64,000 bases of DNA. It comes from Octopus sinensis (taxonomy: Eukaryota). The notes under the pieces were generated by a model. That model saw only the letters and a program-made list of their open reading frames with translations, was not told the DNA's origin and did no database searches. Numbering within the stretch: position 1 is the stretch's first letter; every line of letters starts with the position of its first letter. This document shows positions 17,800 through 54,252 of the stretch, one piece after another. Location: assembly GCF_006345805.1 (NCBI RefSeq), contig NC_043016.1, positions 32,612,001-32,676,000 on the forward strand, given 5' to 3'. The translations under genes were made by a program, and so were the position numbers.

Positions 17800-17839
<40 letters not shown>

Positions 17840-17860: not shown

Positions 17861-17910
<50 letters not shown>

Positions 17911-17922
17911 ATATATATATAA

Positions 17923-17978
<56 letters not shown>

Positions 17979-18009
17979 ATTTTAATCCAAACGGGAAACA
18001 AAAAAACAA

Positions 18010-27884: not shown

Positions 27885-29795
27885 TCAGCCATTTAATTTG
27901 GGGGAGAACTTAGCTATGAAATATTTTTCCATATTCCTCCTGAAAGAGGTGTCGTTCTTCGGACATTTGTAGAAGGGAAAGATCTTAAATTTTCCTTCTC
28001 CACACGTAGCTAGGTGTGTACTTAGTGGTATTTTGCGTAGTTCTTCCAGCCGAATATGTTGTCGGTGAATCCTGGCTCGCTGGCACAAAGAATTCTCCTT
28101 GCACGCGGGGCAGGTTATGCAGTATATAACGTTCTGCGTCTTGCAGTTCATATCTGCATTTACTTTGAATACGTAACCACTTTTAAATCTCATCTCTCTG
28201 TTTCCCTCTATGTATTTGTTGGTGGGGTTGCTGCAGATCCCACATCTACCATCTCCGCACTCTTTTGCAAAGAATTCCGTTTTACTTTCTGAAGAGAATT
28301 TCGCTCTTGTTAGGTGTTTCTTTAGGTTTTTGTCCTGTCGTCTACTGTTTTTTATGCTATATTTGTTTAATATGTTTTTCATTTTGGGGCTTTGTAAGGC
28401 TATTGGTAGGTTTGAATGTATGGTTTGGAAGATGTTGGTAACTCCAGGGTTGTGCGTGTTTATAAAAGGGATAATGTTTTCTTTGATTTTTGTTTTGGGT
28501 GTCCTGAGATGTGCGATGTCTAGTTTTAATGCTCTTGTGATTCCATTTTCTATTAGTTTAAGGGGGTATTTTTGCTCTAGGACGAAGTTTTTGAGTTCAT
28601 CTAGTCTTATTAATCGTATTTGTGAATCAGTTACTATGCTACATATTCGTCTTGCCATACTATATGGGATGTTTCTTTTTGTGTGGGATGGGTGGCATGA
28701 GTGGAAATTTAAATATTGGTGTGTGTCAGTTTTTTTGTAGTGGGTGTCTGTTGTGACGATGGAGTTGTGTATTTTGATGTTGATGTCTAGGAAGGGAAGT
28801 TCGTTGTGGCTGGTATCTATTGTGAAGTTGATAGATGGGTGCAGCGTATTGAGGATGTTGTGGAATGTTCGTAGGTCTTCCTCTGATCTGTTCCAAAAGA
28901 TGAAGCAGTCATCGAGGTAGCGTTTCCACTTTTTCTTGATGTCTTCTCTGAAGTCGTGTTCGAAGACTTTCCCTATTTCATCGTATAGTTTGTTCTCCAG
29001 GAAACCCATCACCAGGTTGGCATATGAAGGTGCGAATTTTGTACCCATAGCCGTGCCTTTTATCTGTCGATGAGAATGTATTTTCTTCGAGTATTAATTG
29101 GGTGGCTTGGGTGATAAAGTTTGTCTTAAAGCGTTCGTCTATAAGTTCTCTGTATTTTTCTATCGATTGTTTTATTGCTTCTAGACCTAGGGTGTGTGGT
29201 ATGTTTGTGCATAGATTTGTGACATCAAAGCTTGCAAGTATGGTGTTTTTCGGGACTGTATTTGGATTGTGTGTGAGGAAGTCTATGTCATCCCTTATGT
29301 AGCTTGGTATCTGTGGGCATAAAGGTTTGAGGAGTATATCTATGAAGTGGCTTAGTTGTTGTGTTGGTGCCTGGAGTCCTGCCACTATTGGTCTCATTGT
29401 GAGGTCTGCAGGCCTTTGTATTCTTATATAGTGGTTCCTCTGTTCCTTTATGGCTCTCTGTATTTCAGAGCTTTTATGAATTTTAGGTAATCCATAAAAA
29501 TTGCTTTCTTTGGTTCTTGAGTTGCATAGACACTCTTTCTACTTATCTGTAAAGGAGTTCTGGTATTAATTGACTAAAGTTCTAATTTTTTTTATTGTTG
29601 CTTTCTCCGGTGGTGTTGGTTCCTCTTTATAGTATGTCTGGTTGTTCAGTAACTCCAGTATCTTTTCTTTGTAGTAATCTGTATCCATAATTACTATTGC
29701 TCCACCTTTGTCAGCTTCTTTTATAATGATTGACTTATCATTTTTCAGTTTTTGTAAGGCTTGTTTTTCTCCTCTGCGGAGATTCTATTTGCATT
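27885..29795 (-). mobile_element. Penelope-like element (RT, Cys linker and GIY-YIG remnant), 5'-truncated and frameshifted
   Basis: KEADKGG, YGLPKIHK, RPIVAG, MGTKFAPSYANL, RYLDDCF, HPSHTKRNIPYS, CGDGRCGIC and NVIYCITC; the YIG half appears deleted. Confidence 0.93.
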
Positions 29796-30542
29796 TGTGT
29801 GTGTGGAGAGGGAATTTATATATATATTTATATATATTTATATATATATATATATTACTGGAAAACGGCTGAATGGATTTTCACCAAATTTGGCAGAAAT
29901 ACTCATTGGGTGAGTGGCTCGAACTCATTATTATGGTTTGATTATCTTCAAAACAGGCGGATGGGTGAATCAAGATGTCATTTTTCTTTGTTACATAGGC
30001 ATAAACAATAAACAGGGGGAAATAACTGTTGATGCAATTTTGTTGAAATATGAATTCGTCTGAGAATATATTTATTAAATTAAATTTTATCCTTATGAAT
30101 GCGCATTGTTTTGAATTAATCATGCTTTATTTGTTTTTACATTGAGATTTTGATGATGTGCTTGCATCATTTTTAGTATGACATCGCAGGGTAGGCGTGA
30201 GAGGCTGAAAAATGGCCAGATATGGCTGGTTTAAATGCCTAAGTATTGTTTGTAAAGAATAAAATGTTTTGAATGGTACAACAATGCACTATAATATAGA
30301 TAATTCTTATTTAAGAATATCTGAAGAAGGAATGTAATTCTGAAACATCATATCAGATCATGGATAACTAAATTACAACAGGTAAATAGCCCATTGTCTA
30401 TATTATAGTACATTGTTGTACCATTCAAAACTTTTTATTCTTTAAGTATTAGAATAGCAGGCATCAATAAACTCAAAATATCCACTCACATAAGAATTTA
30501 TAACATAAGAACAAACAAAGGTGAAAATTCCTTTGAAATTAC

Positions 30543-30711
30543 CTGAAGGTTTTTTGGGGATGATATTAGTTTGTACCTGGACATCGATGACAGCTTTTAA
30601 GGCACTGCTATTGACAAGTTTTTGACTGACAGCATTAGCCGTTTCTTCAACAAGATCTTTTAAGGTAGAAATCAGGGTTCCTGAATTATCATTGTGCTTC
30701 ATATCCAGTGA
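30543..30711 (-). CDS. Ser/Jag: Jagged exon (exon 25 equivalent), 169 bp, juxtamembrane
   Basis: [56 protein letters not shown]. Confidence 0.9.
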
Positions 30712-32214
30712 CTGAAACGTTAAAGAAAAGAGAATGCAATTAATATTATGCAGACAATAATATATTTCACAGTGTGCACTCTCTACTGCTCAGATATTTT
30801 GATATATGGAGTGGGCCCAAAGTCATGAGCCAAATAAGTTCAATATGATTTGGAATTATGAAAGACAAGGTTCAATTTTTCTAAAAATTGAATAAAATAA
30901 ATAAAATTATGATGAATACACATGTAATGTGTATTCAAGTACATGATGAACAAAATGAATGATAATAATAAATGTAATAAGGAATGTCACATGTTTTGGT
31001 ACATGACTTTTGGCACACACACAGATATAAACACGCCTGCAAACAATTGTAATTACCAAGCATACGATTGCCAGAGCTGTTAGAATGCAGCACAAAGTGC
31101 AATGTTGTGTTCATTCCAGTTCCTTATATTTTGAGTTCACCTGCATCAACAATGCTAGCGCTAAACTGTTTCGTTTCCACTTGGGCAAATTCAGTTCATA
31201 ACAGCTAGTTTTCCATTACAAAAATGAATAAATAAATAAATAAATAAAACAAAAAGATCTTGCCCAGGCCAGCAAATCCTTCTGAGTGATGAAAACAGTA
31301 AGAAGCTCATTGTATGTGTGTATGTGTGTCACTGTTGCTTGACAACCAATGTTGATGCGTTCACATACCCATAACTAAGTGATTCAGTAAAAGAGACTAA
31401 TAGAATAAGTACCATGAAGTTAAGTCATTTGACTAAAAATTCTTCAAGGCAGTGCCCCAGCATGGGCACAGTCTACTAACCGAAACAAATAAAAGATAGG
31501 AACAAAAGTTAACTTACCAGTGTAATTTCAATGGAGTCAGCTCTTCGAAGTTGGATAGCACATAGAATAATAATCGTTTCTTTCTTGGCATAAGCTTGCA
31601 CTTTGGGGAAGGCTCGAAGAGAACTGCAGATATTGCCAACAGATACACCCTGTAAAATAAAAGAATCAATTGTAATAGTCAGGTCTACAGACTGGCAATT
31701 ACTAAACTCAGATTCAACATGTGAATTTTAAAATTTCTTTGTAAAGTTTCATATTTTCCTTTGGTGCCTCTTATTACTTAGTTTTCAGGAATTTGGTCAC
31801 CATGATTTTCAAAGAACTTTTCAGCTATTGCAAAAGTCTGTTGAAAACTGATGTGTTTAAATTCCTGAAAACCAGCTTGAAACCATGTTGTAAATGCCAT
31901 AACAACGATGATGGAGTCTCCAGTCAAAGATGATGTATAAGTGTTCATATTTTGCCTGACGACTGGCACAAATGATTTGTTTTATAGCAATCAAATGTAT
32001 GTGCTGTATATTAATTAACTCACTCTCTCCATTAAATAAACATTGCCCACTCAAATGCATGGCGGACCACATGTCAGGTGTTAAAAATGATTGCAAAGCA
32101 ACAACATGAGACAAAGTGTTTTGTCCAAGAACACAACATATCACCTGGTCTAGGAATTGATACCATAATCTCACAATTGTGAATGCAACAACCTAACCAT
32201 TAGGCCACACACCC

Positions 32215-32269: not shown

Positions 32270-33661
32270 CCTTTCTACTAAAGGCACAAGCCCTGAAATT
32301 TTAGAGAAGGAGACTTATCAATTATATCAACCCCATAATAATTTGTAACATGCAACAGAAAGAGTATTAGGTTAAAATAGCAATAGGTGTATCATACATA
32401 AAGCAGATATATTAGTGAAATCTTAATTTACTGCAGTGTTCATCCTGAGATAGCATCTGTTATGATATCAGAAATATCAGCAACAGATGAAAATCTAACA
32501 GAAGTGGCAGCAGTGTCATTGAGTAATATGAATTTTTACCCAGAGAAGAATTTAATTCCAACTTACTTTTGGCATCCGAGATTTGTCAAAGAGAAGGTTG
32601 ATTTTTGCACAGTTATTACTGATTTTTGCTTCATTTGGTATACAGTTGGTTTGTATATCTCTGGGAGCAGAATCTTCAATCTTTGATATATGTTTACAGT
32701 GACCCCAAGGCAAGCAGGGTGGTGTAAAGCATGTCTGTGTTGTTTTTACAACACACGTTTCATCATGTGCACATATATCGACTGGCTCAGAAACATTTGG
32801 ATGGCTCAAGCAGTTTTTGGGTCCGCACCAAACCTTCAAATATAGAAATATTCCAATGATAATATTCATAAACAAACCAAAACAAAACAAAAGAAAAAAG
32901 AAAAAGAAAAAAATATTATGGACCGGATGATTCCAGAAATATTTTAATGATAATAATAATTAATGCCACAATACTAGTTAAATTACAATTAATATGGCAT
33001 GAATTATATCATCATCACTGTTTTAATGTTCCCTCTCTTCCATGCCTGCAAGGGTTGGATGAAATTTGTTGAGATTTTCCACAACTGGGTGCTCTTCCTG
33101 TCACCAACTTTCACTTGTTTCCTATTGCTGGACATGACCTTGCAGAAGACTGGAAATGAATGACACTGCTCACACAATGGTAATGCTTGCAATTTATTTT
33201 GCTATGTCCTCACAAGGAAATGATAACAGACACAGATATATATATATATATATATATTGAGCTGTGTGTTGTGTTCTTGAGCAAGACACTTTATTTCATG
33301 TTCTTCCAGTTCACTCAGCTGTAGAAATGAGTTGTGATGTCACTGGTACCAAGCTGTATTGGCCTTTGCCTTTCTCTTGGATAACACTGGTGGCATGGAG
33401 AAGGGAGGCTGGTATGCATGGACAACTTCTGATCTTCCATAAACAAACTTTGTGCCGCAGAAGGGAACTTTCTAGGTGCAATCCCATGGTCATTCATGAT
33501 TGAAGGGGAACTTTTATATATATACATTATCATCATTTAACATCTGTTGACCATGCATGGGTTGGATGGTTTGACTGGGCTGGCATGCTGGAAAGCTGTA
33601 CCAGGCTCTAGTCTGATTTGGCATGGATTTTTAAAAAATTGTCAATTTTTATTATATTCAT

Positions 33662-33709: not shown

Positions 33710-34994
33710 CATTGTGTACAGTGCTCAGGTGCACTACAACTCATCTAAAGTGTATGTATAATCAGGTGTAGTTTCGGCGGATTTCGGAAAGCATGAGGGC
33801 CTTAAAGGATGCAGTGTCATGGCAGTCAACAACTGACGCAGGCAGTTTGTTCCATGCTTCAGCAACTCTGAGCGTGAAAAAATGTTTCCGAAAGTCATGG
33901 GAGCTGTGTTGTTTTCTGACTTTGTAGGCATGTCCACGTGTGTTAGACACATGAAGATCAAAAAGGTGTTCAGTGTTGTTTTTATATATATTGTTTCCAG
34001 TATAAATTAATATATTACTAAGAATATTACCAGTTGCTGGCACATTGGAAAAAAAACCTGCCAGTATGCCACATTAGATAGTTTGAGAAGCACTGGTTTA
34101 GAGTACTCTATGAGCAAGGGAAAAAGATAGGAGGTTCATGGCTGGAATGTCTTTTACCAAAGATCAGGATTGACTTGTGGTGCTAAACAACAACAACAGC
34201 AGCAGTAGAACTAATATGTAACAACAACTTGCTGGGTTTACAGGATAAATTCCTTACCTTTGTACAATGAACGCGACCGTTGTTGCAATGACAAGAATTG
34301 CACTCATGTTTCCATGAGCTTTTGTCAGAGTAGGCATGTTGTTTGAAAATACAGGAATTAGGAGAAGGCAAATGTCCAATAACTGAAAATATAACAGAAA
34401 AGAAAAAACTGAAAGAATTACCAAATGTTTTATTGGAATTAAGACAGGCTCTTGTAACCAAAAAGATATGTTAATCCTTAGACCCACCAGAACCTGTTTA
34501 TATAGGTATATGTTTTAGCCTTTAGCATTTACATTATTCTGTCAGATGTAATGCTTATTTGTTCATATTGTTTTGAATTAATCATACATTATCTCATAGC
34601 TTTGAGATTTCAATGATGTGGTCGTTTAGTTTCAAAAGAACATTACGGGGTTGGTGAGAGGCTGAATCTGGTCAGTAGGAACACGAAACAGGTAGAATAT
34701 TTTTGGCCAGATATGGTCAGTTTAAATGCTAAAGGATTGATTTAAATACAACAGAAATTTAATTTTGATTAATTAACAAGTTTACATAGATACATGACTA
34801 ACCATTTTCACATTGATTTCCAGTTCTTCCGGGAGGACAAATACATTTATAGCTACCAATTTCATCAATGCAAGTACTGCCAAAAGCAGATGGATTCGAA
34901 GTACATTCTTGTATATCTGCAATTTCAAAAATATGAGTTATTATGTTACTCTAAAATGTTTTTTATATACAGCACCGTTTTTACATTCCTGTAA

Positions 34995-35031
<37 letters not shown>

Positions 35032-35042
35032 GATACATATGC

Positions 35043-35083
<41 letters not shown>

Positions 35084-38000
35084 GATACACATGCATCTCT
35101 ACAGGGCCGAGGCTTTCCGCCAACTCAATGACACCTCCTTCTACTCCCCTCTGTCCTCTAACCCCACACGTAGCTACCAACAGACGGTATCCTCTACTGT
35201 CCGCGACCTCATCTCGTCCTCCCGTCTCCCCCACACCACATCCAACCTAATTGTGCGAACCCCACGTACCCCCACCATTTACTTCCTCCCCAAAATCCAC
35301 AAACCCAACAACCCTGGCCACCCCATCGTCTCCGCCTGTAACTGCCCCACGGAGCTCATCTCTAAATACCTCGACCGTGTCCTTGCCCCCCTAGTGGCAT
35401 CTCTTCCCTCCCACATCCACGATACCAACCATGCTCTCTGGCTTTTCAACTCTTTCTCCTTTCCTCCCGGCTCCTCCAAAATCCTTTTTACTATGGACAT
35501 TCAGAGCCTCTATACCGTTATCCCTCACCACGAAGGACTGCAGGCACTTCAACACTTTCTTGACCTCCGCTCCAACCCTGAACCTGACACCTCCACACTC
35601 ATTCGTCTGGCCGAACTTGTCCTTACTCTTAACTGCTTCTCGTTCACGGGCGAGTTCTACCATCAGGTCTCGGAAGTGGCCATGGGAACGCGAATGGGCC
35701 CCAACTATGCGAACCTGTTCGTTGGCTATGTTGAGGCCCAAATATTCTCTAATTTCACTGGTCCCACTCCTGAACTATATGGTCGTTACATTGACGACAT
35801 TATCGGTGCCACCTCACTCTCCCGTGAACATCTAGATTCCTTCCTCTCTTTTGTTCAATCTTTCCATCCAGCCCTCCACTTCACTTCCACTATCTCCTAC
35901 ACCTCTGTCTCCTTCCTCGACATTTCGGTTAGCATTTTTCACTCCACTCTTACCACCTCCATTCACTACAAACACACAGACTCACACTCTTACCTCAACT
36001 TCTCTTCCTCCCACCCAGAACACACCAAGCTTTCCATCCCCTATTCCCAATTCCTCCGTCGACGTAGGCTCTGTAGTGACGACCATGACTTTGAGACTCA
36101 GTCTCAACGTATGGCTCACCACTTCATCCTACGTGGATACCCCCTCACCACTATCCACACCACCCTTGCCAGAGCACGTTCCGTGGACCGTGTATCTGCT
36201 CTCTCTCTCTCCCCGAACCCACCCTGTAGTCTACCGCCTCCCTTTTCCCCTCACTTACCACCCCACGACCCTACCTCTCCAACGCACCATTCTTCGAGCT
36301 TTCCGTCATCTCCAGTCCGACCCGTCCACTTCACACCTCTTCCCTAACCGACCCCTCCCCTCTTTCAAACGAGCCCATAACCTTCGAGACCTTTTGGTCC
36401 ATAGCTCCTTCCCTGACCCTACCTCCCAACCTGGCTCGTTCCCCTGCTCCCGCCCACGTTGCCGCACTTGCCCTTACCTCTCCAACACCACCCTCCTCAC
36501 TGGCACCCATCATCGACCCTTTCGCATCATCAACTCCTTCACCTGCACCTCCAGCAATATTATCTATTGCGTCTCTTGCTCTCTCTGCCATTCCCTGTAC
36601 ATTGGACAAACGGGACGCCGCTTGGCTGACCGGTTCGCGGAACACCTTCGTGACATCCACCTTGCGAACGACACACCGGTCTCACGCCATTTCCGCTCCA
36701 CCGGTCACTCCTTGCAACACCTGTCTGTGTTCGGTTTGTCCTTACACAGAGGCCATCCGGATTCCCGTTTGCGCCGTGAACAGGAATTAATCTTCTCTCT
36801 TCGCTCTTATATGCCATTTGGTCTCAACTCGCCCCCCTCCCCCTCCTCATCTAACCTCCCCCCCGACCCCTACTTCTCTTCAGTCCTTCATCCTTTCACC
36901 CCTACTTCTCTTCCCTTCTTCCCTCTTTCTCCCTCCCTCCTTCTTCCCTCTTCCCCTTCCCTCTGCTCCCTCACTCCCCTTCTCTCTCTCTCCCCCTCCC
37001 CCTCTCCCTCTATCCTCCCTCCTTCCTTCTCCCCCTCTTCTCCCCTTTCCTTCTTCCCCCTCCCCCTTACCCCCTTCTTCTCCTCTCTCTACACTATACC
37101 ATACGACTTTACACATCACATCATATATACATACACATGTCTAGACCTCTCATACGCACTAATACTCTCTCATACACACACACACACTCTTCTCACACAC
37201 ACACACACACACACACTCTTATGTTTGAGCGGGGGTCATTCAACCCTATTATCCCCCCTAATTTCGCTCTTGCGTCTCATGTTTGATCTTTGACTTCTGG
37301 CCGAAATCAGATCGCCATGTTGATTCGCTAGCTTTTGCACGCATATTTTTTCTCTCCTTCTTTCTGTGTTTTTTTCTCTGTGTATCTTTCTGTTGAAGAG
37401 CGTAGGCTCGAAACGTTAAAGACTTGTTTCATTTATATTTCCTGAGCGCCATACTAATACAATTGTTTGTCTGTATTCCACCTGCCTTCGTCTTTTGTTT
37501 ATTTCCGTAAACCTGCCTTCGTCTTTTGTCTATTTTCATAAAGCTTACCGTTATATATGTGTGTATGTATATATATATATATATATGTGTGTGTGTATGC
37601 GTGTATATATATATATATTTTATATAGCTTTCATAACGTATATAAGAATAGTGTAGTGTGTGTGGTGGTGGTGGTGTGTGTGTGTGTGTCAGTGTGCACT
37701 CATGCAAATGTGAGTGAATAGGATATGTAGTCATGGTTGACTTGGCCGACAGAAGTACTGTGGTAAAGAGTAGTCACCAGCAGCAGCAGCATATAGGTGG
37801 TGGTGGTGGTGGCGAAGGAGAGGGGCAGATCAAGCCAGAAGTCAGAACTGGGAACAATATGATCAAGAGGAGACAACTAACAGTACAAATGACGTAAACT
37901 AGGTTAGTGTCAAGGACAAACAGGTGGAATAAGTAAGACGCTCTTACTTCATCTGACAACAGATTTCCCACAGATAGATATACAGGTACACACACACACC

Positions 38001-38268
38001 ACACACGAATTTCCTTCAACTCTCTTCAAGTGCATAAAAGCCGAAATTGATGTGTAACAAACAGAGATTAGTTAGCGATGCAAAGAGGACCTCACACCCA
38101 TGCACATTTACGTGTGCATGTATGTGTATTATATATCACAATTCTGCTTAGCGCTATAGAAATGCCAAAAACCAACTGTGAGAACTCATTATACTTATGC
38201 TTAATGATTAATTATGTAACTCTCGTTCTTTTGTCATTATTGATATATAAACATATATATATATATAA

Positions 38269-38311
<43 letters not shown>

Positions 38312-38598
38312 GTAACGAAAGGGGAGGAGAAGAATTTCAATTATCCTCCACATGGTGAGTTGTGATACAAAATATATATATAAAATAGAAGAAGGAAAAT
38401 GCACACAGTTCACATAGTTTTAATATATTTTATAAGTGAAAGTGTATTGTGTTTGTCAACAGGTTTTGCTTTCGCTCGTCAGTATATTGTCAATGTATCA
38501 TATACCCAAAAAGCAGCACACTCTAAAACATAAAGTAGTAATGTATTTATGTAGTTAAGTCTATGTCTGGTCACTATATGACTGGACATAGATTTAAC

Positions 38599-38655
<57 letters not shown>

Positions 38656-38963
38656 TGTTGTATTTAGGAATGGTAATTTTGCCAGTTTAGCCAATAAAAA
38701 CACACGCACTATATATTTGGTGTTACTTTGCTTCAGTGTTATTTATTTTTTACATTAATCTTAATCTTAATCTTATGGCCGAAATAAGATTAAGATTAAT
38801 GTAAAAAATAAATAAGACTAAAGCAAAGTAACACCAAATATATAGTGCGTGTGTTTTTATTGGCTAAACTGGCAAAATGACCATTCCTAAATACAACAAT
38901 ATCTGTTTCAACACACGACTTCACATAAAAAATCTTGCACAACAAATATTTAAACGTATATAT

Positions 38964-39053
<90 letters not shown>

Positions 39054-40823
39054 GTTTAGCGTCCGTTTTCCATGCTAGCATGGGTTGGACGGTTATATAA
39101 TCATCTTATAATCATCTCATAATAATGACTTTTATTACTACCTCAGTCCATCTAAATGTATATATCTGTCATTACCTTTCATAAAAAGCCTTTTTTATTT
39201 GCAATGTGTATTTTCGTTGATTTTTTCATATTTTAATAGAATTTAATAGAATAACTGTTATTATCAGGCTGGTGATTAGAACATAAATTAACATGAAATT
39301 TTGATGCTAGATTTTAATTTAGATCACTTTAATTACCTTATTGTTACCAAATTTCTTATTTCTTTAGTGCCCACAAGGGGCTACACACAGAGGGGACAAA
39401 CAAGGACAGACAAACGGATTAAGTCGATTATGTCAATCCCAGTGCGTAACTGGTACTTATTGAATTGACCCCAAAAGATGAAGGGCAAAGTCGTCCTTAG
39501 CGGAATTTGAACTCAAAACGTAGTAGCAGACGAAATACTGCTAAGCATTTCACCCAGCGTGCTAACGTTTCTGCCAGCTCAACGCCTTGTATTTGTTACC
39601 AAATTTCTATTGAAATACGCTATCTTTGTCTCAATTAATTTCGAAAATGGTGAAGAATTTTATAAAATAACTTTGTCAGTCATTATTGAGCTGGTGTTAG
39701 TTTGGAATATAAAATTAACATGAAATTTTGATAGAAGGATTTGATTTAGATCACTTTAACCTTTTTGTTACCATATTTCAGTTGACATAACCTGCCTCTC
39801 TCTCTCTCTCACAACTGAATTTGAAAATAATGTAGAGTACAGTAAGATAAACTTTTTTATTATTAGGCTGGTGTTTAGAACATAAATCATCATGAAATTT
39901 TAATTTAGATCACTTAAAACAAATTCTGTATTGTAAAACCAGGGCACTCTCTGGCAAGCTAGAACCAAAAGGGTTTTAACACCTAAACATAAACACAAAT
40001 ATATATATTTCTTTACTACCCACAAGGGGTTAAACACAGAGGGGACAAACAAGGACAGACAAACGGATTAAGTCGATTACATCGACCCCAGTGCGTAACT
40101 GGTACTTAATTTATCAACCCCGAAAGGATGAAAGGCAAAGTTGACCTCAGCAGAACTTGAACTAGGAACGTAACGACAGACGAAATATGGCAATGCATTT
40201 CGCCCGGTGTGCTAATGTTTCTGCCAGCTCACCGCCTTATAAACACAAATATATAGACAGACATACTCAGGTATACATTGATTAAGTGATATGAATCATT
40301 AACCAATACAGAACCTATGCAAGATGAAATAACAGCTGGTAGAATGAAACGCTTACTTATTCTGCAGTCTGGTCCAGCAAAGCCTTTGCTACAGTCACAC
40401 AAGTACCAATTTACACCATCAATACACTGAGCACCATTGTAACTGAAATGGAAAAACAACAACAACAATAATAATAATAATAATCCTTTCTACTAAAGGC
40501 ACAAGGCCTGAAATTTGCAGGGAGGGGACTAGTTGATTACACTGATCCCAGTACTTAATTTATCAAGGATGAAAGGCAAAAGGTGACCTTGGCAGAATTT
40601 GACCGCAGAATATAAAATGGATGAAATGCCGTTAAGCATTTTACCAGGCATGCCAATGATTCTGCCAGTTCACCACCTTAGCAGTGGTAATAATTTGGTA
40701 GAAAGCCAGTAATTTTAGTTTAGAAGATAAGTCAATTATATCAACCCCAGTGATCAACTGGTACTTATTTCAATGATCCTGAAAGGATGAAAGGCAAAGT
40801 CAACCTCAGTGGAATTTGAATAA

Positions 40824-40858
<35 letters not shown>

Positions 40859-41477
40859 TTAATAATAATAATAATAATGATTCAGTACCAGACAGTGGCT
40901 CTCATGGCATGCCCTGATGCAGTACCAAGCAGTGGTTCTCGTGGCTTCTGATCTTAACTGATTGGAAGTGTTATCATGTACATTGTTTTGTCTTGGTATA
41001 AAAGATGAGCTACAGCAAATATTCTGCTCAATACCACAGATTTGCTTGTCAGTTGTTTGACCTTAACCAGTTAAGAATGTCCCTTAGTGGCTGACGATAT
41101 GTGCATCTCTGATCACAAGCAGAAGTAGTGGAGGAGCATCATAGCCATGTGATGAGAGGAATTTTTTGGGGTTTGAATAATTCACCTCTGGAAACATGGG
41201 TGTTTCGTTCAACATCCTTAAACAACTCTTATTCAGGGACCTTTTGAGCGGGATGGGTTACTCGACCAGAAGAAAATTCTAACTGGGCCCCACTTGCAAG
41301 GTCATGCACTGTTTATCTTGATATGAGATCACCCTGTCGCGCACATATTGTTGCGATGCATGTGCCTAGTGTACCCTTATCGGATGGGTAGTCATGATGG
41401 GTATTCTGGGCTTTGTATATTTTACCCCAGTGTCACTTAGATGGCATGCACTGCTCTCTCACTCAATAATAATAATA

Positions 41478-41524
<47 letters not shown>

Positions 41525-42567
41525 TGGCATAGTTACCAAGGAAACGGGTAGCAATCATTAATGTTCTGCTCACAGACATTGCCTTCAAATCCCTCCTTAC
41601 AAAAACAAGTGAAGCTGTCGCCAGAATTGACACAGGTTCCTCCATTCTGACAAGGGTTTGAATCACAGCTGTGCCAAGAAGCTTTGAAAGAAAATTTTAA
41701 ATAATTTTTTAACAAAAACAAAAAATTAAAATTCAATATTGTTTAACATTTTGTGTCTATATTTTTAACAAATATGCTTGGGCCATTTATTTCAAAAGAT
41801 TTTCTTAAATAGTCAAGAATTTGGAAGGAATTTAGTAACTTAAGAAAGAGTTTCCAAAAAGTTTTCCTTATTGTTGTAGTAACTAGTATCTCATTAGTAT
41901 TAATTGCAACCCTACATTGTTGTTGTTTGTCCCTTCTTGAGCCATACCTGGCTCATAAGGGCCGGTTTCCCAGTTTCATTGGTATATAGGTTCCCCACCT
42001 GGATGGGACACCGATTTATCACAGGTGAGCTGCTAGATGCAGGAGGAAAAAATGAGAGAAAGTTGTAGCGGAAGAGTCAGCAGAAGTTTGCCGTTACTTT
42101 CTGCCAGAGCCACATGGAACTTAAGTGTTTCGCTCATAAACACACACATCACCTAGTCTGAGATTCGAACCCATGATCCCTCGACCATGAGTCCACTGCT
42201 CTAACCACTAGGCCATGTGCCTCCACACACCCTATATGGGAGTAATTAACTCTTCTGTTACCATATTTCTGTTGAAATACACTGTCTTTGTTTCAATCAA
42301 TGATGAACACACTGTATATTCACAACAGTGAAGGGTTTTGTAACAGGAAGGGCTTCTGGCTGTGATGCCCCAACAAATGCTAGTATGGTAAAATGGATAC
42401 AAAAAAAACCAGAATAAATTTTTATATCAATTAATACCTAATCTGTAAATAATGCACAAGATTAATATTTTGTATTTTAACATTAATCTTTCCTTATGTA
42501 ATTTATCATTTTCAACATCATAGTGACTAGAAACAAGGAAAATATTACAAATTAGTTAAAAATACAT

Positions 42568-42644
<77 letters not shown>

Positions 42645-43270
42645 TAGATAGATAGATAGATTCTTATCAATATTTAGCAAAAGCAACAGAATGACTCAAG
42701 ATCCGAGTGTTTCATGCATTAGCATTTATCAAATGCACGAAACTCACAAACCTTGAATTACTCTCTTGCTTCTGCTAAAAATATTAATATATTCATATTT
42801 TGAGTTCTATTTTTCCTGTTTTCATCACCATATCTCTCTCATATATGTTAATAATAACAATAATCCTTGGGTGGAATTTGTAAACATTTAATGCATCGCT
42901 ACATATGCTTCCACAAATTCCACCTGAAGAAATGAACCAATGGCAATGATCAACTGGATGTTCACGGATACTACAGACTACACTGTAATTATCGCAGGAT
43001 TACAGACTACGATCTTAAGAGACATGTAATTTGTGAAAACACATGTAGCGATATAAATAAATGTTTATAAATTTCGTCCAAGGATTATTTTTGATATTAT
43101 AATTTACATGTATCCCACATTATAACTTGATACAACTTGATGCAACCTTGAAAAACTAGTTCACCAGTCAGCATCATTTGACTGTGGCTGGCATAATGGA
43201 ATGGGAGCTTTATATGCATGTGCAAAATGTTTCCCATAAACAAATTTAAAAAATGTATGTATGTGTATAT

Positions 43271-43347
<77 letters not shown>

Positions 43348-46300
43348 TATATATATATAAGAAGGTTTGGAGGTGATATAAAGGCATTATATATTAGAAG
43401 AAATAAGGTACTCAGAAATCTGGATGGTTTTACATTTACATGTAAAACCATCCACATTTCTGAGTACCTTATTTCTTCTAATATATATATATATATATAT
43501 ACATACACACACAAAAAAAAATGTGTATGTATATATACTTCTGCATATGTGTGTGTAAGTATTTCTTCTTGAGTGAAATGTTCTGACTTTTTTTTTTTTA
43601 CAGTAATGCAACGAATTAGTAAAAAAACTGCAGTCATGTCAATTTGCTTAATTACCTATTTGACAGGTATCGCCATAGAATCCATCTGGACAGAGACATT
43701 GAAATGATGCGCCACGATCCTGACAAGTTCCTCCGTTGGAACATGTAAAACAATCACAGACTCACTTCTGTAAAATAACAAAGAAAGAACAAAAATATTC
43801 AATAGTAGTAGTAGCAGCAGCAGCAGTAGTAGTAGTAGTAGTAGTAATAACAACAATAACAGTTGGAGAAGGGGACTAGTCGATTACATGGACGCCAGTG
43901 TTTCACTGACCCTTATTTCATCTACCCTGAAAGAATGAATGGCAAAGTTGACCTCGGCAGAATTTGAACTTAGAACACAAAAATGGATGAAATGCTGCCA
44001 AGCATTTTGTCTGACACGCTAATAATAATAATAATAATAATTAATAACAATCATAAACTTCAAATGCAAAAGAGTATAATTTCACCATATAAGACATGTA
44101 CCGTTTTCATTTTATTTCCTTTTGCAGTGAAGTATATCTCAAAGACCATCACAGTAATCTCTTTGCACAAGCACCATTAATGAGATTTCTGTGAAAATCT
44201 CTTAAATCTTTTATTTCTAAAAAGTTCTATGCATCAAAGACAAATAGATTCTTCTCACAGGCTTCAGAAATATTTAATCCTTCATTTTTCAGTGTGTGTG
44301 TATCTGCGTGTATAAATATATATATACATATACATACACACATACATACAAACAAAAAGCATAAAGACACACACGACAGGCTTTTTTCAGTTTCCATCTA
44401 CCAAATCCACTCACAAGGCTTTAGTCAGCCCAAAGGTATTGTAGAAGATTCTTCTCCAAGGTGCCACACAGTGGGACTGAAACTGGAACCAAGTGGTTGG
44501 GAAGCAAGCTTCTTACTGCATGGCCATGTCTGTACCTAAAGCCACTATTTTTAGAATGATAATGCAAGAATGGTATGAGATGTCAGATTTGGCTGGTTTG
44601 AATTTAAAACGAGTAGAATATTTGGGTTGGATATGACTCATTTAAATGCTACTAACTCATGTAGAGATTGCAACATTGAACAGTAATATCTATTAATTAA
44701 TCATTAAACTAATTAAACCATGTTAAATTAGTTCTTGCTTCCCAACCACATGGTTCTGGGATCAGTCCTATGTGGCACCTTGGGAAAGTGTTTTCTACTA
44801 TAGCCTCGGGCTGACCAAAGCCTTGTAAGTGGATTTGGTAGATGGAAACTGAAAGAAGCCCATCACATATGTGTGTGTGTGTGTATGTGTGTATGTATGT
44901 ATGTATGTATGTATGTATGTATGTATGTATGTATATATCTGTCTGTATCTTTGTGGTTGCATTTGTCCCCCACCACTGCTTGATAACCCCAGCGTTGGCA
45001 TACTTACCTGCCCCGTAATTTCGCAGTTCAGCAAAACAGAGACTAGTAGAATAAGTACAAGGCTTAAAAAAAAGTCCTGGGGTCAATTTCTATTACTAAA
45101 ACCCTTTAAGGCGGTGCTCCAGCATGGTTGCAGTCAAATGACTGAAATGAGTAAAAGAAACAAAAAAATAATAGAATAATCTCTTACTTGAATTGCATGT
45201 TTTCCCTTTCCATCCTTTGGGACACACAGCAGAAACCGTTTATTCTGTCAGTGCAGATGCCATGATTTTGGCAAGGATTTGGACTACAATCATTGGTGTC
45301 TGGAAATATTTCAAGACAAAAACATATATATAAATATATTATAATAAATATCTCAAGACAAAAATATATAAATAATACATATATATATATATATAATATA
45401 TATATATATATATCTTTAAAATTTTGGAATAATGTTACTTGATAAGGTGCATATAACTCAGAGGTCTACAAGTATCTACAGTTTGAGCAACTATTTCTCT
45501 GATTTGTGGGGTCGAACAAGAAAGAGATGGTTGGATAATGTCCATAATCTCAATCAGTCACATTTGGGAATCCAGCTGGAGAGTCTAATGATGGTTGCTT
45601 CTCATAGGACCCTATGAAGAAAGAGGTACTTGAGGACTCTACTTCCATGACCCATCCAGTAATAGTGGGTGAAGAAAACAGATGGCTGGACAGATGATTT
45701 AATTGGAAATTTTTCTTATCCTTCCTTTTTCTCAGATGGTAATGTGTTATCTGAGGAAATTTGGATGCTACTTTTGTAGCATGTAGTGACTCCCTTATCG
45801 GCTTGAAAGAGAAATATGATTCTTACACCACAGAAAAGCTTCTTTCAAACTGGAAGGGGTTTGCATGGTTAAGCGTAACCTCTAAACTGCAGAACAACAC
45901 TTTAGATGTTACACGGCAGCCATTATTACAAATGTTTTAATTTGTTTTATCCAAATTATTAAAATTTAGATTTACATAATGAATTTATATTCTTAATTTT
46001 TATGATTAGTCTATAAAATTGTATTATTTTTATAATTATTGAGTTATCAGATAAATTTGCTTTCTTTCTTTCTATTTGGTACTTCAGTTTGAAAAGAAGT
46101 AAAACTTTATCCAAAAGTTGTAGAAGAATAGAGCTCCACAAAAACAAAAAACAATAAAAATATTTTTCGTGTTAATTCAAATAACATTGGAAAGAAAGGA
46201 TTAAGATAAATGGGACAAAAAAAAAAAGTAACTAATTTATCTGATAATCCAATCTTTTTTATTCTAAAAAATAATTCTTTCTATTAAAGGCACAAGGCCT

Positions 46301-48472
46301 GAAATTTTGTTCAACTCCAGTGTTTAAGTGGTTCTTATTTTATCAACCCCAAAATGATGGATGTAAGGTAAAATTGACCTCGGCAGAATTTGAACTCAGA
46401 ATGTAAAGATGGATGAAATTCCACTGAGCATTTTGCCCAGCATGCTAATGATTCTGCCAGCCAAAAATAATATAAAAATAATAAATAATAAATCATAAAA
46501 AAAAAAGTGTTACTCACTGCGGCTACAGCTACTACCTTCCCATCCCGGTGCACAAACACACCGGTAAGATTGTACTCCATCAATGCAAGTCCCATGGTTA
46601 CGACATGGATTTTGCAAGCAGTCATTTATGTCTGAAATTAGAAAATAGAAACGGAAATAGAGAAATGTTTGGAATTTTGAATGGTTGGGTAGGTGGGCCT
46701 TCCTTTTGTAGATAACAGATGTGGGTTCTGAAATTTTTTGCTGAATACAATCTGCACAGGTGATTTTCTAATAGTGCTCCAATATTTGTGCTGCACATTA
46801 AGTTCACACTTTCCCTCCATCCCCCTCAATCAAATTGGTGTTGTTTGTACAGGTGCTTGGTGTGGTGTGCCACATGTCAGATGTCAAAGTAATTGCAAAA
46901 CAAAACGAAAAAAATACCCCCTCCTCAAGAACACAGAGGCGCTGCCCAGTCTGGGAATCAAAACCACACACACACAAAAGCATGCATGCATACACACAAA
47001 CACAAGTTTCTCCTGAAAGCCTATTTAAGTCTCGTCAAGCCATTAGGTAAGACTCAGGTAAAAAGTGTTTTGCAAGAAATCTAACTCCACTTTTCAGAAC
47101 AGGGCTTCCTTATCAATGAATATTCAATTTTTATTGTTATATTTCGGAATGCAAATTTTGCCAGTTTAGCCAATAAAAACACACACACTATATATTTGGT
47201 GTTACTTTGCTTCAGTGTTATTTATTTTTTACATTAATCTTAATCTTATTTTGGCCAGAGTTCTTTCGTCACACTCCTGTGATGCGGTCACAGGAGTGTG
47301 ACGAAAGAACTCTGACCGAAATAAGATTAAGATTAAAGTAAAAAATAAATATCACTGAAGCAAAATAACACCAAATATATAGTGCGTGTGTTTTTATTGG
47401 CTAAACTAGCAAAATGACCATTCCGAAATATAACAATATCTGTTTCAACACACGATTTCACATAAAAAATCTTGCACAACAAATATATAAACGTATTATT
47501 CAATTTTTAGTTAAAAGACAAAAAAAAAAAAAACTACTTTAAAATGAGAGAGAAAGAGAGAGGGGAGAGAAAGATATATATATATATATATGTATATGTA
47601 TACACACAAACAAGGACAGACAAAGGGATTAAGTCAATTACATCGACTCCAGTGTGTAACTGGTACTTATTTAATCGACCCCACCACCACCACTACCCAT
47701 GAAAGGCAAAGTCAACCTCGGCGGAATTTGAACTCAGCTTGCCGCCTTCACAAACACAACTTGCACACATGTCAGGTTTCTTTCAGTTTCCACGTACCAA
47801 ATCCATTGAGAAGGCTTTGGTTGGCTCAGGATTATTATAGAAGGTACTTGCCCAAGGTACCATGTAGTGGGACTGAACCATAGGCTGCATTGTTGAGCTT
47901 TACACATGTTATACACACTGAACAAGGCCCATAACTCTGTTAGCTCCGACTGCTTGAAAGACAAAGATTTATCTTGCTACTTCACCACTAAATGGCTTAA
48001 TCATAGCAAAAACATTCAGTTGTGGAAAACAACTGTTTGGACAAATAAACTATTACATATAAATCTATGCAACAAACAATGTGAAGACATAAACCAGCAA
48101 ATAAAGAAAAAAAGAAAAAAAAAAGAAATATTTAAAAAATTCTGATGTCTTACTTTCATGACAATATGTTCCCTGGTAGCCTGACTGGCATTCACATACA
48201 AAACGACTTCCAGCCTGGCTTCGACAAATTCCATGTTTACCACAGATGTTGGATGATATTGAACGCACCTCCCCACTAGTTCGGTTGGACGGAACAGTTA
48301 TGGTACATTGGTCAATAACTGTTGATAAACAGGTGAACAAGAAATAATAATTTTTGAAATGACCGGTTTTTAAAGTTTTATTTGAACCATCAATCAGCAC
48401 CACCATGTTTCTTACTGCCACCACCAACACCACAAAGTTACTAAGTATTTTTATAAAATTTTCTGAACCTAA

Positions 48473-48503
<31 letters not shown>

Positions 48504-51500
48504 TCACACACACATACACACACACTCACACACACACACACACACACACACACAAGAAAGATGACAAAGGAATAAATGATAATCTTATGAAATACAATAG
48601 CTTACAGCTGTTTCTACTACAGTGGAAAGATTAGACGAGTGTTTGAATAATGCATCATAGCTTCATCAGAGCCTTGAATATGAAGTACAATATATTTGGG
48701 GAAAAAAATGGTTGGCTTTTAAATGGGAAACCATGACCTGAATGGAAGATAATGGCAAGTAGAAGAAATGGACAAACTTGAAGCTAACCTTCACAAGAAC
48801 CATTTGGACAAATTTTCTTCTTTTTTTCACAAGTTTTTCCTTCAAAACCAGGCTGACAATGGCAGTAGAAATCTCCTCGCATATCATAACATGTAGAACC
48901 AGATCTGCAAGGGTTTTGTTGGCACAAATTGATAGCAATCTAGTAATAGAAATAAAGTAATATTGTATGAATTCATTTTGGTTTTTAAAGAATTTATATT
49001 TACAAAGAATAGCATTATTTGGTTTAGAAATAAAAAAAAAACAGAAGTAAATAATCAAAGACACTCATTACAACAGAAAAATATCCACAGATTCTAAAAT
49101 TATATCCTTAATCTTTACCATATTTCAATTGAAATACACTGCTTTTCATTTTAATTGATTTTGAAGATAAAGAATTTAATAAAATAACTTTCTTATTATC
49201 AAGTTGGAGTTTGGAACATAACATGATATTTTGATAGGTTTTTATCTAGATCACTTTAAGCCTTTTGTTACCATATTTGTTGAAATATCGTGTTATTATT
49301 TCAATTAATTATGAAAATAATGAAGAATTTTATAAATTAACTTTGTCATTATCAAGTTGGTGTTTGGAACATAAATTAAAGACAAAATTTTGATAGAAGG
49401 AACTTTTAACTTAGATGACTTTAAAACAAGGATGTTGTCTCATAGAAACAGAGCTGATCTCAAGCAGGTCGATATCAAAAGAGTTAATGATGAAGTGAAT
49501 TAGACAGATTTCTGTAATAATCTTTTTCAAGCAAATTCTTATCAATCTTCATTAGTTTAGATCCCTCTAATTTAAGATCCCCACAAGTCTCCAGCTCTCT
49601 CTTTCGTATTTTCCATTCTTCCTATTCTTCAATTTCTTCAATAAATCAAGATATGCCTCTTGTTGTGTCTACGGAGAGACATTATGCAAATATAATTAAC
49701 ACATGCACTGGTCCTGTTCAATAGGTTGCAGGTAGCAATGAAAGATTCTTTCACAAACAAAGACAAAACAAATTAAGTAATCAATTAGTTAGTTGGTTAT
49801 TTAACCAATTGACAAATGAAGGAATGAAACTGAACCAGTGTTTGTGTTAATTATATTGGCAAAATGGCTCCCCTTAGACACAATAAAATTTGTTTCAATA
49901 CATGAATTCAAATAACAGATCTTACAAACCAGATACAAAAATCAAGATGCTTTCTTTTAACAATTCATTGAGATCTTTATTGAACATTTCTGGTGAGGCT
50001 TGACACAAACTAAGATGAATGTCCATGAAACAACAACAGCTGCTGCCATGACCACCACCATCACTCATGGCTGAGCGCTTGTGTGTATAAAGGTACAAGA
50101 AGATTGTTTGTGAGTAGACTAGAGTTAGAAGATGGCACCTACCTGACACTGCAAACCAACATAGCCTGAGGGACACTCACACCTGAAGCCATCGTTAAGG
50201 TCGTGACATACACCTCCATTTAGACAAGGTAGGCTATGGCACCCATTTATCGCTGCATCACAGTGCCGCCCTGTAAAGCCTGGTCTGCACTGACAACGGT
50301 AATCATTCACAAGGTTCTACAAACAACAACAACGTTACACATATAGATACATATATACATTTATAAATACATATATACATACATACAGACATACAATTAG
50401 TGGCAATTGAATTTTTGCTTTTTGATTTTATATTGCAGATAGCCACCTAGCCACCTTCATTATCATATATAAATATATAGCTATCTATCTATATCTATCT
50501 ATATATATATATATATATATATATGTAAATGCAGCTTCAATAATGGACAGAGTCAACATCCATTGACAAGGATGCAAAAGTAATGAAAATTTTGGAAGAA
50601 AAAATATAATGAGTGGAAATGGAACCAGTGAGTGTGTTTTAAGCCATTAAGACAATATGACTCTCCCCAGATGCAACAAAATTTGTTTCAATGCATGAAT
50701 TTACATGAAGAATCTTGCAAACCAGATACAAAAACAATATATATATATATATATAAGCTGTCCTTCTTATCACTTTATGGTCAAACAGGAAATGTGGGAC
50801 CTGCTTCTATTTATTTACTTTTTTATTTTGTTTAGCCAGGTAAACTGGAACAAAGAGACTGACACTCATTCATGAAGGGTACATTAGAAGAGGTTTGAAC
50901 TCATGCCCATGTGGTCAACAGTCCAGCCCAATAAGCCTCACTGTTATTGATGCAATGAAGAAGCCACAATGCAGTTGCTTCTTGAACTGCTAGAAACAGC
51001 AGCAAAATCTCAACCTACTCTTGGATGCCCCTAGAAAAAAAAAACTCGACAGAATAGTCCCAGTTGGAAAGCCTTACATCATGCATGACTGTTTAGGTGA
51101 CCACCCTGAGTTAAACACCAATGACAGCCACAGTCACTGTGCTGAGCATTAAATATGAAACAAAAAATTTTTTAAATTTAAAAAATAAAAATGCCAAGAT
51201 GTAAACTCACAACGCATGTAGCACCATTGTGACACTGACCAACACAATCAATGATGTCTGCAAGAGAAGAAACAGTTGAGAGAATATTAGAAAGCTTATT
51301 CCATATGTGGTCATCTGGCCTAAAAGAGCAAGAAATGACAACGGAAGAGAATTTATCATTATCATCATCATCATCACAAGCAAAAAAAAAGAAAGAAAAA
51401 AGAAAAAAGCAAAACGAAAAAAAACAACTTAGATTTATTAGAAATATACTTTATAAGGTAACATTGGAAAATAATGGGAACTAATACATTGATTAATTTA

Positions 51501-53971
51501 CCACCAAAAATCTTAATTAGAAATGCAGATTAAATAATTAATTAAGATTCTGTTTTCACAAACAAGTATTTAAATACTTATGTATGTACAACTCCAGTGC
51601 ATAAGTACAACTGCTCTTTCTCTCTCTCTTTCATTCTCATAGTCAGCCCCTCTCCCTCCCTCCCTCTCTCTCTCTCACACTACACACACACATGTATACA
51701 AACACTCATGCACACACATACATACAGTCGCACACGCACAAACACACTCGCATGCACACATGCTCACACACACAAATAGACACGGACACATAAATATACT
51801 CACACACATGTACACACATGCAAGTACCCCCCCATACACACAAGTGTACAAAAAAAAAAAGGTTATTAGCTTTGGATAATACTCCTAAGATGAAACAGTC
51901 CAAGATGTATACTTACTCATATCACAGTTTTTCCCAGTCCAACCTGCCTGGCACTGACATTCATAGCTACCTTGAAGATTCCGACAGTAGATTGCATTCA
52001 CACAGGTGCTGTCTTTGCATTCATCGACATCTAGCTGGCACTGAGCCCCTTGCCAGCCAGGACGACAATGGCATTTGTATCCATTAACTTGATCTTCACA
52101 CCAGCCATTATTCATGCATGGGTTTGATGCACACTCGTCAATATCTGTTAATTTAGATTAATGCAATAAATATATTCATTTCTTTTTAAACTAAACACAA
52201 GGCCCACTCTTGGAGAAGAGGGATACAGCATATTACATATACACACACATCACATATATAATATGTATAATATATATATATACCGGAGTAAACACATAAA
52301 TGTGAAACAAGGTGGAAAAAAGAGTACTCAAATACCAGTGGTAGAGTAATATGCTTTATTTAAAGCAGCGTCCGACAAACGGGAACGTGAAACTCAGAGT
52401 AACAGGTTTTGTTGAATTTTCTGCTGCTTTAAATAATATATATATTATACATATTATATATATAATTATTCAAAATTATAATTTAGGGTATCTAAGAGAC
52501 ACCAGCACACTGGAAATAGCAGTCAAAACTTGACTCTAAAACCACATTAAATGTTCATACATCTTGCTAACTCCCTGTGATTACAGTAAATCCAAGGTCA
52601 AAACAAGGTTATTTCCCTTCGAGAATGTAACCTGCACTCCATACGTAATAACAAGCAAAACAACAATAACAATAACAACAAAGCATATTTAGTGATGAGA
52701 TGAAGTGAGTTCATAATATTATTTACATACCAGTTTCACACAAAGATCCAGTCCAGCCAGGAGCACAAATACAAGACACTCCATTTGCTGCAATTACACA
52801 TGTGCCACCATTTTCACATGGATTAGTTTCACAGTCACGATCAACTACAAGGAAACAGTAAGCAGATTAAAGTATGTTTATAGATTAAAAACACTCCAGA
52901 TTATCAAATCCACAAATCCAATGAGATATTAAATCTACCAAACAAATTGTCAAATCCATCCCATAAGTTGTTAAAGCCATTCATCCAACAGTAAGCAGAT
53001 TAAAGTGTGTTTATAGTTTAAAAACACTCCACAGATTATCAAATCCACAAATCCAGTGAGATATTAAATCTACCAAACAAATTGTCAAATCCATCCCATA
53101 AGTTGTTAAAGCCATTCATCCAACAAGCTGCCAAATCCAACCAGTAGTTATTAAATCCCTTATCCATTCCCAACAAATTATTGTCAAATCCACCTCCAAA
53201 AATTGTCAACTTTACACCTATAAGTTGTTAAATCTACCCCATCAAATTCATCCCACAAGTTGCTAAATCCACCCCTCTAACAAGTTAAATCCATTCTACA
53301 AGTGTTAATCCACCCCTTCAAGTTACAGTAAATTTATCCAATGTGATTTAGCTCAAACTGAAAGCATATGTCATAATTTTTCTATTTCCGTATATTTATA
53401 GTCAGAAGAGAAACAATAGCAAACTCTGGTCCCTTTTCAGGGTCCCCAAAACTTGTCGAAAGAAGTTATTCTCAAACTGAAAATCTAGACTAAAAATGTT
53501 TACAGCAGAGCAGACCCAGTCAAAGACACCAAAGAACCAGGTGCTGATGGTGCAAAATCAGTCATCAGCTTCAGTTTCTCAGTCCCAGAACAAGAATGGT
53601 TCCTCTGAGTGCCTAAGGTGCTGAATATCGCTTGCCAGACCATAGCTGACTTAAAGCTATGGTAGCTTTTCCCAAGGTGCCACACAGTTGATTTGAACTT
53701 GGAAAGACGTAGTTGTGAAGTAAATCTTCATAACAACACAGCCATGAACCAGTATTGAAGAATTTCATAAATATTTGAAAATACAAATATATATATAGGC
53801 GTAGGAGTGGCTGTGTAGTAAGTAGCTTGCTTACCAACCACATGGTTCTGGGTTTAGTCCCCACTGTGTGGCACCTTGAGCAAGTGTCTTCAACTATAGC
53901 CTCGGGCTGACCAAAGCCTTGTGAGTAGATTTGGTAGACGGAAACTGAAAGAAGCCTGTCGTATATATGTA

Positions 53972-54027
<56 letters not shown>

Positions 54028-54208
54028 GTGAATTGAAGAAATGGAGTTGAACGAAGATTGAACAGAAATCGTTTTATTGCATTCTACATGTGTTTCGAAA
54101 GGCACAATTTACCAAATTCCGATTGAATAAGGAGACCATATTGTGTCTTTCTCTTCAGGAAGAAACTTTTGATTAATCTGCAACAAGATTATTCATCTTT
54201 CTATTTCA

Positions 54209-54252
<44 letters not shown>

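Follow-up and report, generated by a model that had tools for sequence, protein, structure and literature searches.

In humans, CYP21A1P and GBAP1 are unprocessed pseudogenes that exchange sequence with their respective parents, CYP21A2 and GBA1. The NOTCH2NL genes of hominids are partial duplicates of NOTCH2 that keep the promoter, the signal peptide and the first exons and give rise to an expressed and functional secreted protein. Here, we analyzed a stretch of 64,000 nucleotides (nt) from Octopus sinensis (CM016878.1:32,612,001-32,676,000, assembly GCA_006345805.1), which we refer to as the window and whose positions are used throughout unless another locus is named. On its minus strand the window carries a series of Jagged-like exons, which very probably constitute a partial, unprocessed pseudogene of the Notch ligand gene Jagged, the intact parent of which is located on the same chromosome.

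Like CYP21A1P and GBAP1, the copy in the window is a duplicate that retains introns, shares a chromosome with an essential parent and is disabled by small deletions and point changes. As in these two cases, it is near-identical to its parent over long tracts, in a mosaic typical of interlocus gene conversion. Unlike both, it is truncated at its 3′ end and, in the DNA examined, also at its 5′ end, and it has been duplicated again. The resemblance to NOTCH2NL lies in the lineage-specific partial duplication of an EGF-repeat gene of the Notch pathway, the presence of several copies on the same chromosome and the putative conversion between parent and copies. The octopus copies differ from NOTCH2NL in the absence of 5′ exons from the DNA examined, in two frameshifts with a premature stop and in the lack of any sign of function. 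To our knowledge, neither a phenotype of the octopus Jagged copies nor the transfer of one of their disabling lesions to the parent has been reported, and we found no description of Jagged duplicates or pseudogenes in octopus in the searchable literature. A survey of the Notch pathway in lophotrochozoans required a full domain architecture of the genes it retained, a filter that such copies would not have passed. As a kind, a partial Jagged pseudogene is ordinary, and the gene-conversion mosaic is its sole feature beyond routine interest.

A partial Jagged copy and its lesions

The octopus Jagged proteins were retrieved by a search with the concatenated exon translations of the window, for which the 796-residue concatenated query was needed to obtain the long octopus relatives. 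The 90% cluster of the O. bimaculoides protein contains three O. sinensis entries and one O. vulgaris entry, and a second cluster contains two further, shorter O. vulgaris entries. The window is contained at 100% identity in locus L002 (XP_036367430.1). It was compared to the second O. sinensis copy c1 (L003, XP_036367431.1), to the O. vulgaris copies cB (L001, CAI9734458.1, at 20.73 Mb) and L005 (CAI9734447.1, at 20.43 Mb), and to the O. sinensis parent (L004, XP_029648597.2). The exon translations of the window agree residue for residue with XP_036367430.1 and XP_036367431.1, including the lack of EGF3 and of a transmembrane segment, and both of these O. sinensis models are named 'LOW QUALITY PROTEIN: jagged-1b-like'.

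The initial annotation of the window had suspected a recently pseudogenising duplicate or allele of Jagged, and a second, intact Jagged gene is indeed found. In O. sinensis it lies at CM016878.1:29.71-29.74 Mb, 2.9 Mb from the window and on the opposite strand. It possesses canonical EGF12 and EGF13 exons of 114 nt, the motif NPCAFG and a last exon encoding the transmembrane segment and the cytoplasmic tail. Its O. vulgaris counterpart CAI9734499.1 (1090 residues) also contains MNNL, DSL and EGF3. The EGF12 and EGF13 exons both measure 114 nt in Argonauta hians as well, and EGF12 reads GFRC in Argonauta and in O. bimaculoides. The collinearity of window and parent extends over exons and introns, from about 55919 to about 29854, at 98-99.4% identity. 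The window copy is, as required of an unprocessed pseudogene, an intron-containing paralogue of an intact parent in the same genome.

The window copy comprises 17 recognisable exons of the Jagged/Serrate type on the minus strand, from EGF1/2 (57517-57387) to the juxtamembrane region (30711-30543), with the EGF exons mostly in phase 1-1:

57387-57517, minus strand: end of EGF1 and EGF2, 131 nt; first recognisable Jagged exon of the window copy
52731-52844, minus strand: EGF4, 114 nt, phase 1-1, identical to parent
51917-52144, minus strand: EGF5-6, 228 nt, identical to parent
51211-51257, minus strand: first half of EGF7, 47 nt
50143-50316, minus strand: second half of EGF7 and EGF8, 174 nt
48789-48939, minus strand: EGF9, 151 nt
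48154-48318, minus strand: EGF10, a long Jagged-type EGF with insert, 165 nt; Thr in QCTITVPSN
46518-46631, minus strand: EGF11, 114 nt, intact, identical to parent
45188-45299, minus strand: EGF12 (exon A), broken, 112 nt versus 114
43656-43767, minus strand: EGF13 (exon B), broken, 112 nt versus 114
41537-41681, minus strand: EGF14 and start of EGF15, 145 nt
40357-40442, minus strand: rest of EGF15, 86 nt
34803-34916, minus strand: EGF16, 114 nt; second Cys lost, one synonymous difference from parent at 34861
34258-34382, minus strand: first exon of the VWC-like module, 125 nt; Asp>Asn at 34281
32567-32833, minus strand: cysteine-rich region (WCGPKNC...), 267 nt, identical to parent
31518-31649, minus strand: JAG1 ferredoxin-like domain, 132 nt; Asn>Ser at 31624 and two synonymous differences
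30543-30711, minus strand: last Jagged exon of the window copy, 169 nt; Ile>Thr at 30677

The order and phases of these exons, from EGF2 to the juxtamembrane JAG1 domain, are those of canonical Jagged/Serrate genes (XP_029648597.2, CAI9734499.1, A. hians GAB1604635.1 and human JAG1). The copy shares with them the long EGF10 and the VWC-like module, and outside the lesions its protein is 99-100% identical to the parent. A VWC-like cysteine-rich module and the JAG1 juxtamembrane domain are present after the EGF array. The Pfam family PF23575 JAG1 scores 32.5 bits (cut-off 27), EGF_DL_JAG and JAG1-like_EGF2 exceed their cut-offs, and VWC stays slightly below its own (27.1 versus 27.6 bits). Unlike canonical Jagged, the copy has no MNNL, DSL, EGF3, transmembrane segment or cytoplasmic tail, its EGF12 and EGF13 are out of frame, and its EGF16 is devoid of the second cysteine.

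The two broken exons, A (45299-45188) and B (43767-43656), each measure 112 nt instead of the 114 nt found in the parent, as the initial annotation had noticed. Exon A retains a cag acceptor and a gtaag donor, and its frame changes internally, within or after the residues GFCCV: compared to the parent, a TG is lost from a (TG)4 run at about 45229, and a C>T change at 45231 converts CGC to TGC at a CpG site, which replaces an arginine by a cysteine. Exon B likewise changes its frame internally and carries an Arg>Cys replacement at a CpG site (C>T at 43752, CGT>TGT). Both shifts had been ascribed to the loss of a TG from a TG run, which is accurate for exon A; in exon B, the alignment to the parent reveals the loss of an AG at about 43759, outside any repeat. 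The suggestion that the unpaired extra cysteines arose by CpG decay of arginine codons is borne out by the parental CGC and CGT. As written, the concatenated exons terminate in the shifted frame at a premature TAG (43658-43656), again as anticipated. The same applies to the EGF16 exon, which reads NPSAFG where the parent reads NPCAFG (TCT at 34890-34888; G>C at 34889, TGT>TCT, Cys>Ser), and to the integrity of the remaining exons, 15 of which keep their frame, with intact AG/GT splice sites in 17 of 17. Three more replacements relative to the parent are located at 34281 (Asp>Asn), 31624 (Asn>Ser) and 30677 (Ile>Thr). The window copy does not have a complete in-frame array of 16 six-cysteine EGF repeats, and judged from its sequence it has probably lost the function of a Jagged gene.

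Several exons of Jagged are missing altogether. No EGF3 exon was detected between 57387 and 52844 by motif search and low-stringency tblastn with mollusc, human and O. bimaculoides EGF3, nor was one found in L001, L003 or L005; EGF3 is present in the parent proteins and forms a separate exon in Argonauta. In tblastn searches with the N-termini of CAI9734499.1 and the Argonauta protein, no exons for signal peptide, MNNL or DSL were found upstream of 57517 in the window, and none for MNNL or DSL within 10 kb (L002), 18 kb (L003) and 37 kb (L005) upstream of the copies. About 22 kb separate the window copy from the end of c1, nearly all of which was searched, and the other copies could have more distant exons. 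At the 3′ end, neither a hydrophobic-stretch pattern nor tblastn detected an exon for the transmembrane segment and cytoplasmic tail in the 30 kb of the window downstream of the copy, and there was no match in L002, L003, L001 or L005. In the parent, this last exon (L004 32611-33057) lies 2.5 kb downstream of the equivalent of 30543-30711. The homology to the parent ends before it is reached:

29817-29855: 3′ end of homology to the parent, corresponding to L004 30841, about 730 nt into the parent's last intron
27888-29538, minus strand: retroelement with a weak reverse-transcriptase match, adjoining the 3′ breakpoint

The remainder of the parent's last intron and its last exon are absent from the 39 kb downstream of the copy. 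The open reading frames of the retroelement match RVT_1 at 22 bits, under the Pfam cut-off, and the element may have been involved in the rearrangement. By its predicted domain content, a Jagged copy without MNNL, DSL and transmembrane segment would be incapable of Notch binding and of membrane anchoring even if its reading frame were undisturbed.

Shared lesions and the divergence mosaic

The second O. sinensis copy c1 is located 49.4 kb upstream of the window copy, and 7 of 14015 aligned sites distinguish the two. Four loci, namely the window copy, L003, L001 and L005, agree to the letter in both 2-nt deletions and both CpG Arg>Cys changes, and the 112-nt exons of the O. vulgaris copies equal those of the window except for one silent CGT/CGG site. 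Since the same lesions recur in two species, two assemblies and two technologies, they are no private consensus errors: the disabling lesions are real and not assembly artefacts. Their occurrence in the copies of both O. vulgaris and O. sinensis further means that they are germline and that the duplication and the frameshifts are older than the split of the two species, which is dated to about 2.5 million years (My) ago (PMC10700109). The initial description as a recently pseudogenising duplicate thus holds insofar as this is a partial, decaying duplicate with an intact parent, while 'recently' applies in a relative sense only, because the lesions predate that split.

Asn>Ser (31624) and Ile>Thr (30677) are likewise common to all four copies, with Asn and Ile in both parents and in O. 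bimaculoides, while the EGF16 Cys>Ser and the Asp>Asn at 34281 are confined to the two O. sinensis copies. Two one-base frameshifts are private and lie in homopolymer runs, a lost G in the EGF1/2 exon of L001 (about 4121) and an additional A in the last exon of L005 (about 70666); they could be either further decay or homopolymer errors of Oxford Nanopore (ONT) reads. Between the window copy and the parent, we counted 9 substitutions in 2250 aligned coding nt, 6 replacement and 3 silent (pN/pS 0.52), and exon divergence from the parent is about that of the neighbouring introns. Judged by the outgroups, five of the six replacements are assigned to the copies; the sixth, Asp>Asn at 34281, is ambiguous, as Argonauta also has Asn. 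Three of the six alter cysteines, two of which are gained and one lost.

The divergence between copies and parent is distributed unevenly along the locus, with two contrasting segments:

46382-54816: near-identical 8.4-kb tract, EGF4-EGF11; one substitution and one small indel relative to parent L004 (about 8050-16480)
43656-45299: divergence island between the broken exons; 29 fixed copy-versus-parent differences in 1612 sites, 18 of them isolated (1.1%)

The stretches neighbouring the 8.4-kb tract differ from the parent by 0.3-1.8%. Differences from the O. sinensis parent that are common to all four copies affect 0 of 6316 sites in this tract and 3 of 3360 and 13 of 4339 further downstream. 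With the count restricted to isolated sites, the island has 18 among 1612, compared to 16 of 14015 elsewhere (Fisher p = 7e-10). Relative to the O. sinensis parent, the divergence amounts to 0.19-0.22% for the O. sinensis copies and to 0.45-0.47% for the O. vulgaris copies. If the duplication predates the split of the species, the closer relationship of the O. sinensis copies to their own parent violates a simple clock. In EGF10, Thr is present in all copies and in the O. sinensis parent, as opposed to Ser in the O. vulgaris parent, in O. bimaculoides and in Argonauta.

The simplest reading of this mosaic would be repeated interlocus gene conversion, with at least one event from copy to parent in O. 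sinensis, the direction of which is read from the one amino-acid site in EGF10. The 8.4-kb tract is a candidate for a recent conversion tract; its identity could alternatively reflect cross- or mis-polishing of such similar paralogues when the O. sinensis assembly was made. The lesion segment has possibly been spared since conversions that brought the frameshifts into the parent were removed by selection. That the pseudogene copies are active conversion partners of the essential parent, and that a copy has donated sequence to the working gene, is a tentative proposal that we place somewhat short of probable. The divergence between the copies of the two species amounts to 0.34-0.41%. If this range corresponds to 2.5 My and the 1.1-1.8% of the island to the true age, a rough estimate puts the duplication at about 7-12 My. 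Near-identity in combination with an island of divergence at the lesions offers a clean cephalopod example of concerted evolution between gene and pseudogene, a modest point of wider interest.

From these comparisons we infer the following order of events. After the split from O. bimaculoides and before that of O. vulgaris and O. sinensis, a segment from the EGF1/2 exon to the last extracellular exon would have been duplicated. The copy would have been placed on the chromosome of the parent, at a distance of a few Mb, and would have lacked the exons for signal peptide, MNNL and DSL, for the transmembrane segment and cytoplasmic tail, and for EGF3. Freed from selection, it presumably gained the two 2-nt deletions, the two CpG Arg>Cys changes and further replacements, and a second round of duplication would have given rise to two copies per species. 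The O. sinensis copies may later have lost the structural cysteine in EGF16, and repeated gene conversion between parent and copies may have erased most of the divergence except around the broken exons.

Transcription and alternative readings of the locus

In current annotations, the pseudogene copies figure as protein-coding genes. The Gnomon model XP_036367430.1 takes an intronic ATG (57543) as its start and uses an internal GT donor at 30577 within the last Jagged exon to reach a non-homologous terminal exon (991-839), 29.6 kb downstream; read-through transcripts of the pseudogene may account for this join. The two O. vulgaris models, CAI9734458.1 and CAI9734447.1, leave out EGF11-13 while preserving the frame, and the start of one lies in transposon-like sequence. 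The O. vulgaris annotation used Iso-Seq and RNA-seq evidence (PMC10700109). Together, the models from both species suggest that some spliced transcripts of the copies exist. They are not consistent with each other, however, and a ligand-like protein is encoded by none of them.

The initial annotation had also considered long-read consensus errors, according to which the gene would be intact and the 112-nt exons would result from consensus or polishing errors in dinucleotide runs. The PacBio basis of the O. sinensis assembly, the position of one deletion within a (TG)n run and the 'LOW QUALITY PROTEIN' label given to the models by NCBI would be in line with this explanation. However, the same two deletions, each beside the same C>T change, would have had to arise in four loci of two species for which different sequencing chemistries were used. 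Illumina linked reads served to polish the O. vulgaris assembly (GCA_951406725), which is based on ONT reads (PMC10700109), the O. sinensis assembly itself shows these runs without error at the parent locus, and the AG deletion in exon B does not lie in a repeat. We thus regard consensus errors as the cause as highly improbable. Equally improbable is a null allele or alternative haplotype of a single Jagged gene that was misplaced in the assembly. The very low overall divergence between copy and parent (0.19% over 14 kb) and the near-identity of the two O. sinensis copies (0.05%) could be taken as allelic, but a distance of 2.9 Mb and opposite orientations separate copy and parent in O. sinensis, and their ends differ, the 3′ flank of the copies being a retroelement and not the last exon. 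In addition, the O. vulgaris assembly independently places its copies at 20.43 and 20.73 Mb, away from the parent, the copies contain a 2.5-kb intron segment that is not in the parent, and the divergence of 1.1-1.8% around exons A and B is far above that of the rest. The allele offered as a possibility at the outset can therefore be set aside.

A further reading would be that the copy is still a working gene in a new role, with the broken phase 1-1 exons skipped in frame so that a shorter EGF/VWC protein, or else a regulatory RNA, is made. It could draw on the intact splice sites, on the in-frame skipping of EGF11-13 in the transcript-informed O. vulgaris models and on the terminal exon 991-839 of XP_036367430.1, whose join through donor 30577 suggests transcript support. 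An AG 7 nt into exon B would moreover yield an in-frame exon of 105 nt; such a splice rescue was considered and dropped because the shift in exon A is internal and not removable by splicing, and because both parental exons measure 114 nt. On the other side, no signal peptide, MNNL, DSL, EGF3 or transmembrane segment was found, which leaves such a product no Notch binding and no membrane or secretory route. The other copies have acquired private frameshifts, one structural cysteine is lost and two are gained, and the models vary by copy and start at intronic or transposon-derived ATGs. A retained function of this kind appears unlikely to us, if less so than the two preceding explanations.

Some observations nevertheless weigh against a partial, unprocessed pseudogene as described here. 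The 5′ limit of the duplication is not fixed, as the sequence of the O. sinensis parent is interrupted by an assembly gap upstream of EGF4. With no splice site damaged and spliced models built in both species, the locus may be transcribed. One of the two O. sinensis copies, which differ at so few sites, could be an assembly duplicate. The pN/pS of 0.52, based on nine changes, is compatible with 1 or with moderate constraint, the counts being too small for a formal test. The identity of the EGF4-EGF11 exons to the parent could by itself suggest constraint; the introns are identical too, which fits gene conversion. We nevertheless conclude that no core developmental gene has been lost here and that sequencing errors are not the cause: what looks like an alarming lesion set in such a gene is the ordinary decay of a duplicate. 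The two truncated pseudogene copies per species should not be counted as Notch ligands, nor be used as probes or markers without copy-specific design.

Structural differences and neighbouring sequence

In the intron upstream of EGF4, an 87-nt unit is present in three extra tandem copies in the parent (L004 6077-6500) compared to all four copies (window about 55919-55757). The assembly gap of the parent locus (L004 5559-5658) lies 418 nt further upstream and is the reason why XP_029648597.2 is 'partial'. The intron before EGF16 contains in the copies, where the window and L001 are collinear, a 2.5-kb segment (37610-35097) not found in the parent, which either was inserted in the copy lineage or was deleted in the parent; it harbors low-complexity open reading frames rich in Gly, Glu and Arg. 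The O. vulgaris copy L001 possesses about 2 kb of extra sequence (16735-18739) approximately 100 nt upstream of its broken EGF12 exon, without counterpart in the window (about 45400).

The gene range of the O. vulgaris parent on OX597829.1 extends over 210 kb and that of the O. bimaculoides gene, XP_052829449.1, over 123 kb. EGF11 and EGF13 are missing from the O. bimaculoides Jagged models, and EGF12 from one of them, with unrelated residues in their place, and the O. vulgaris parent model has no EGF4; these gaps are probably annotation or assembly problems. Downstream of the pseudogene, an element of about 2-4 kb, with open reading frames of no obvious function, occurs three times in the same orientation (13852-10928, 10036-7154 and 3742-1638) at 93-97% identity.

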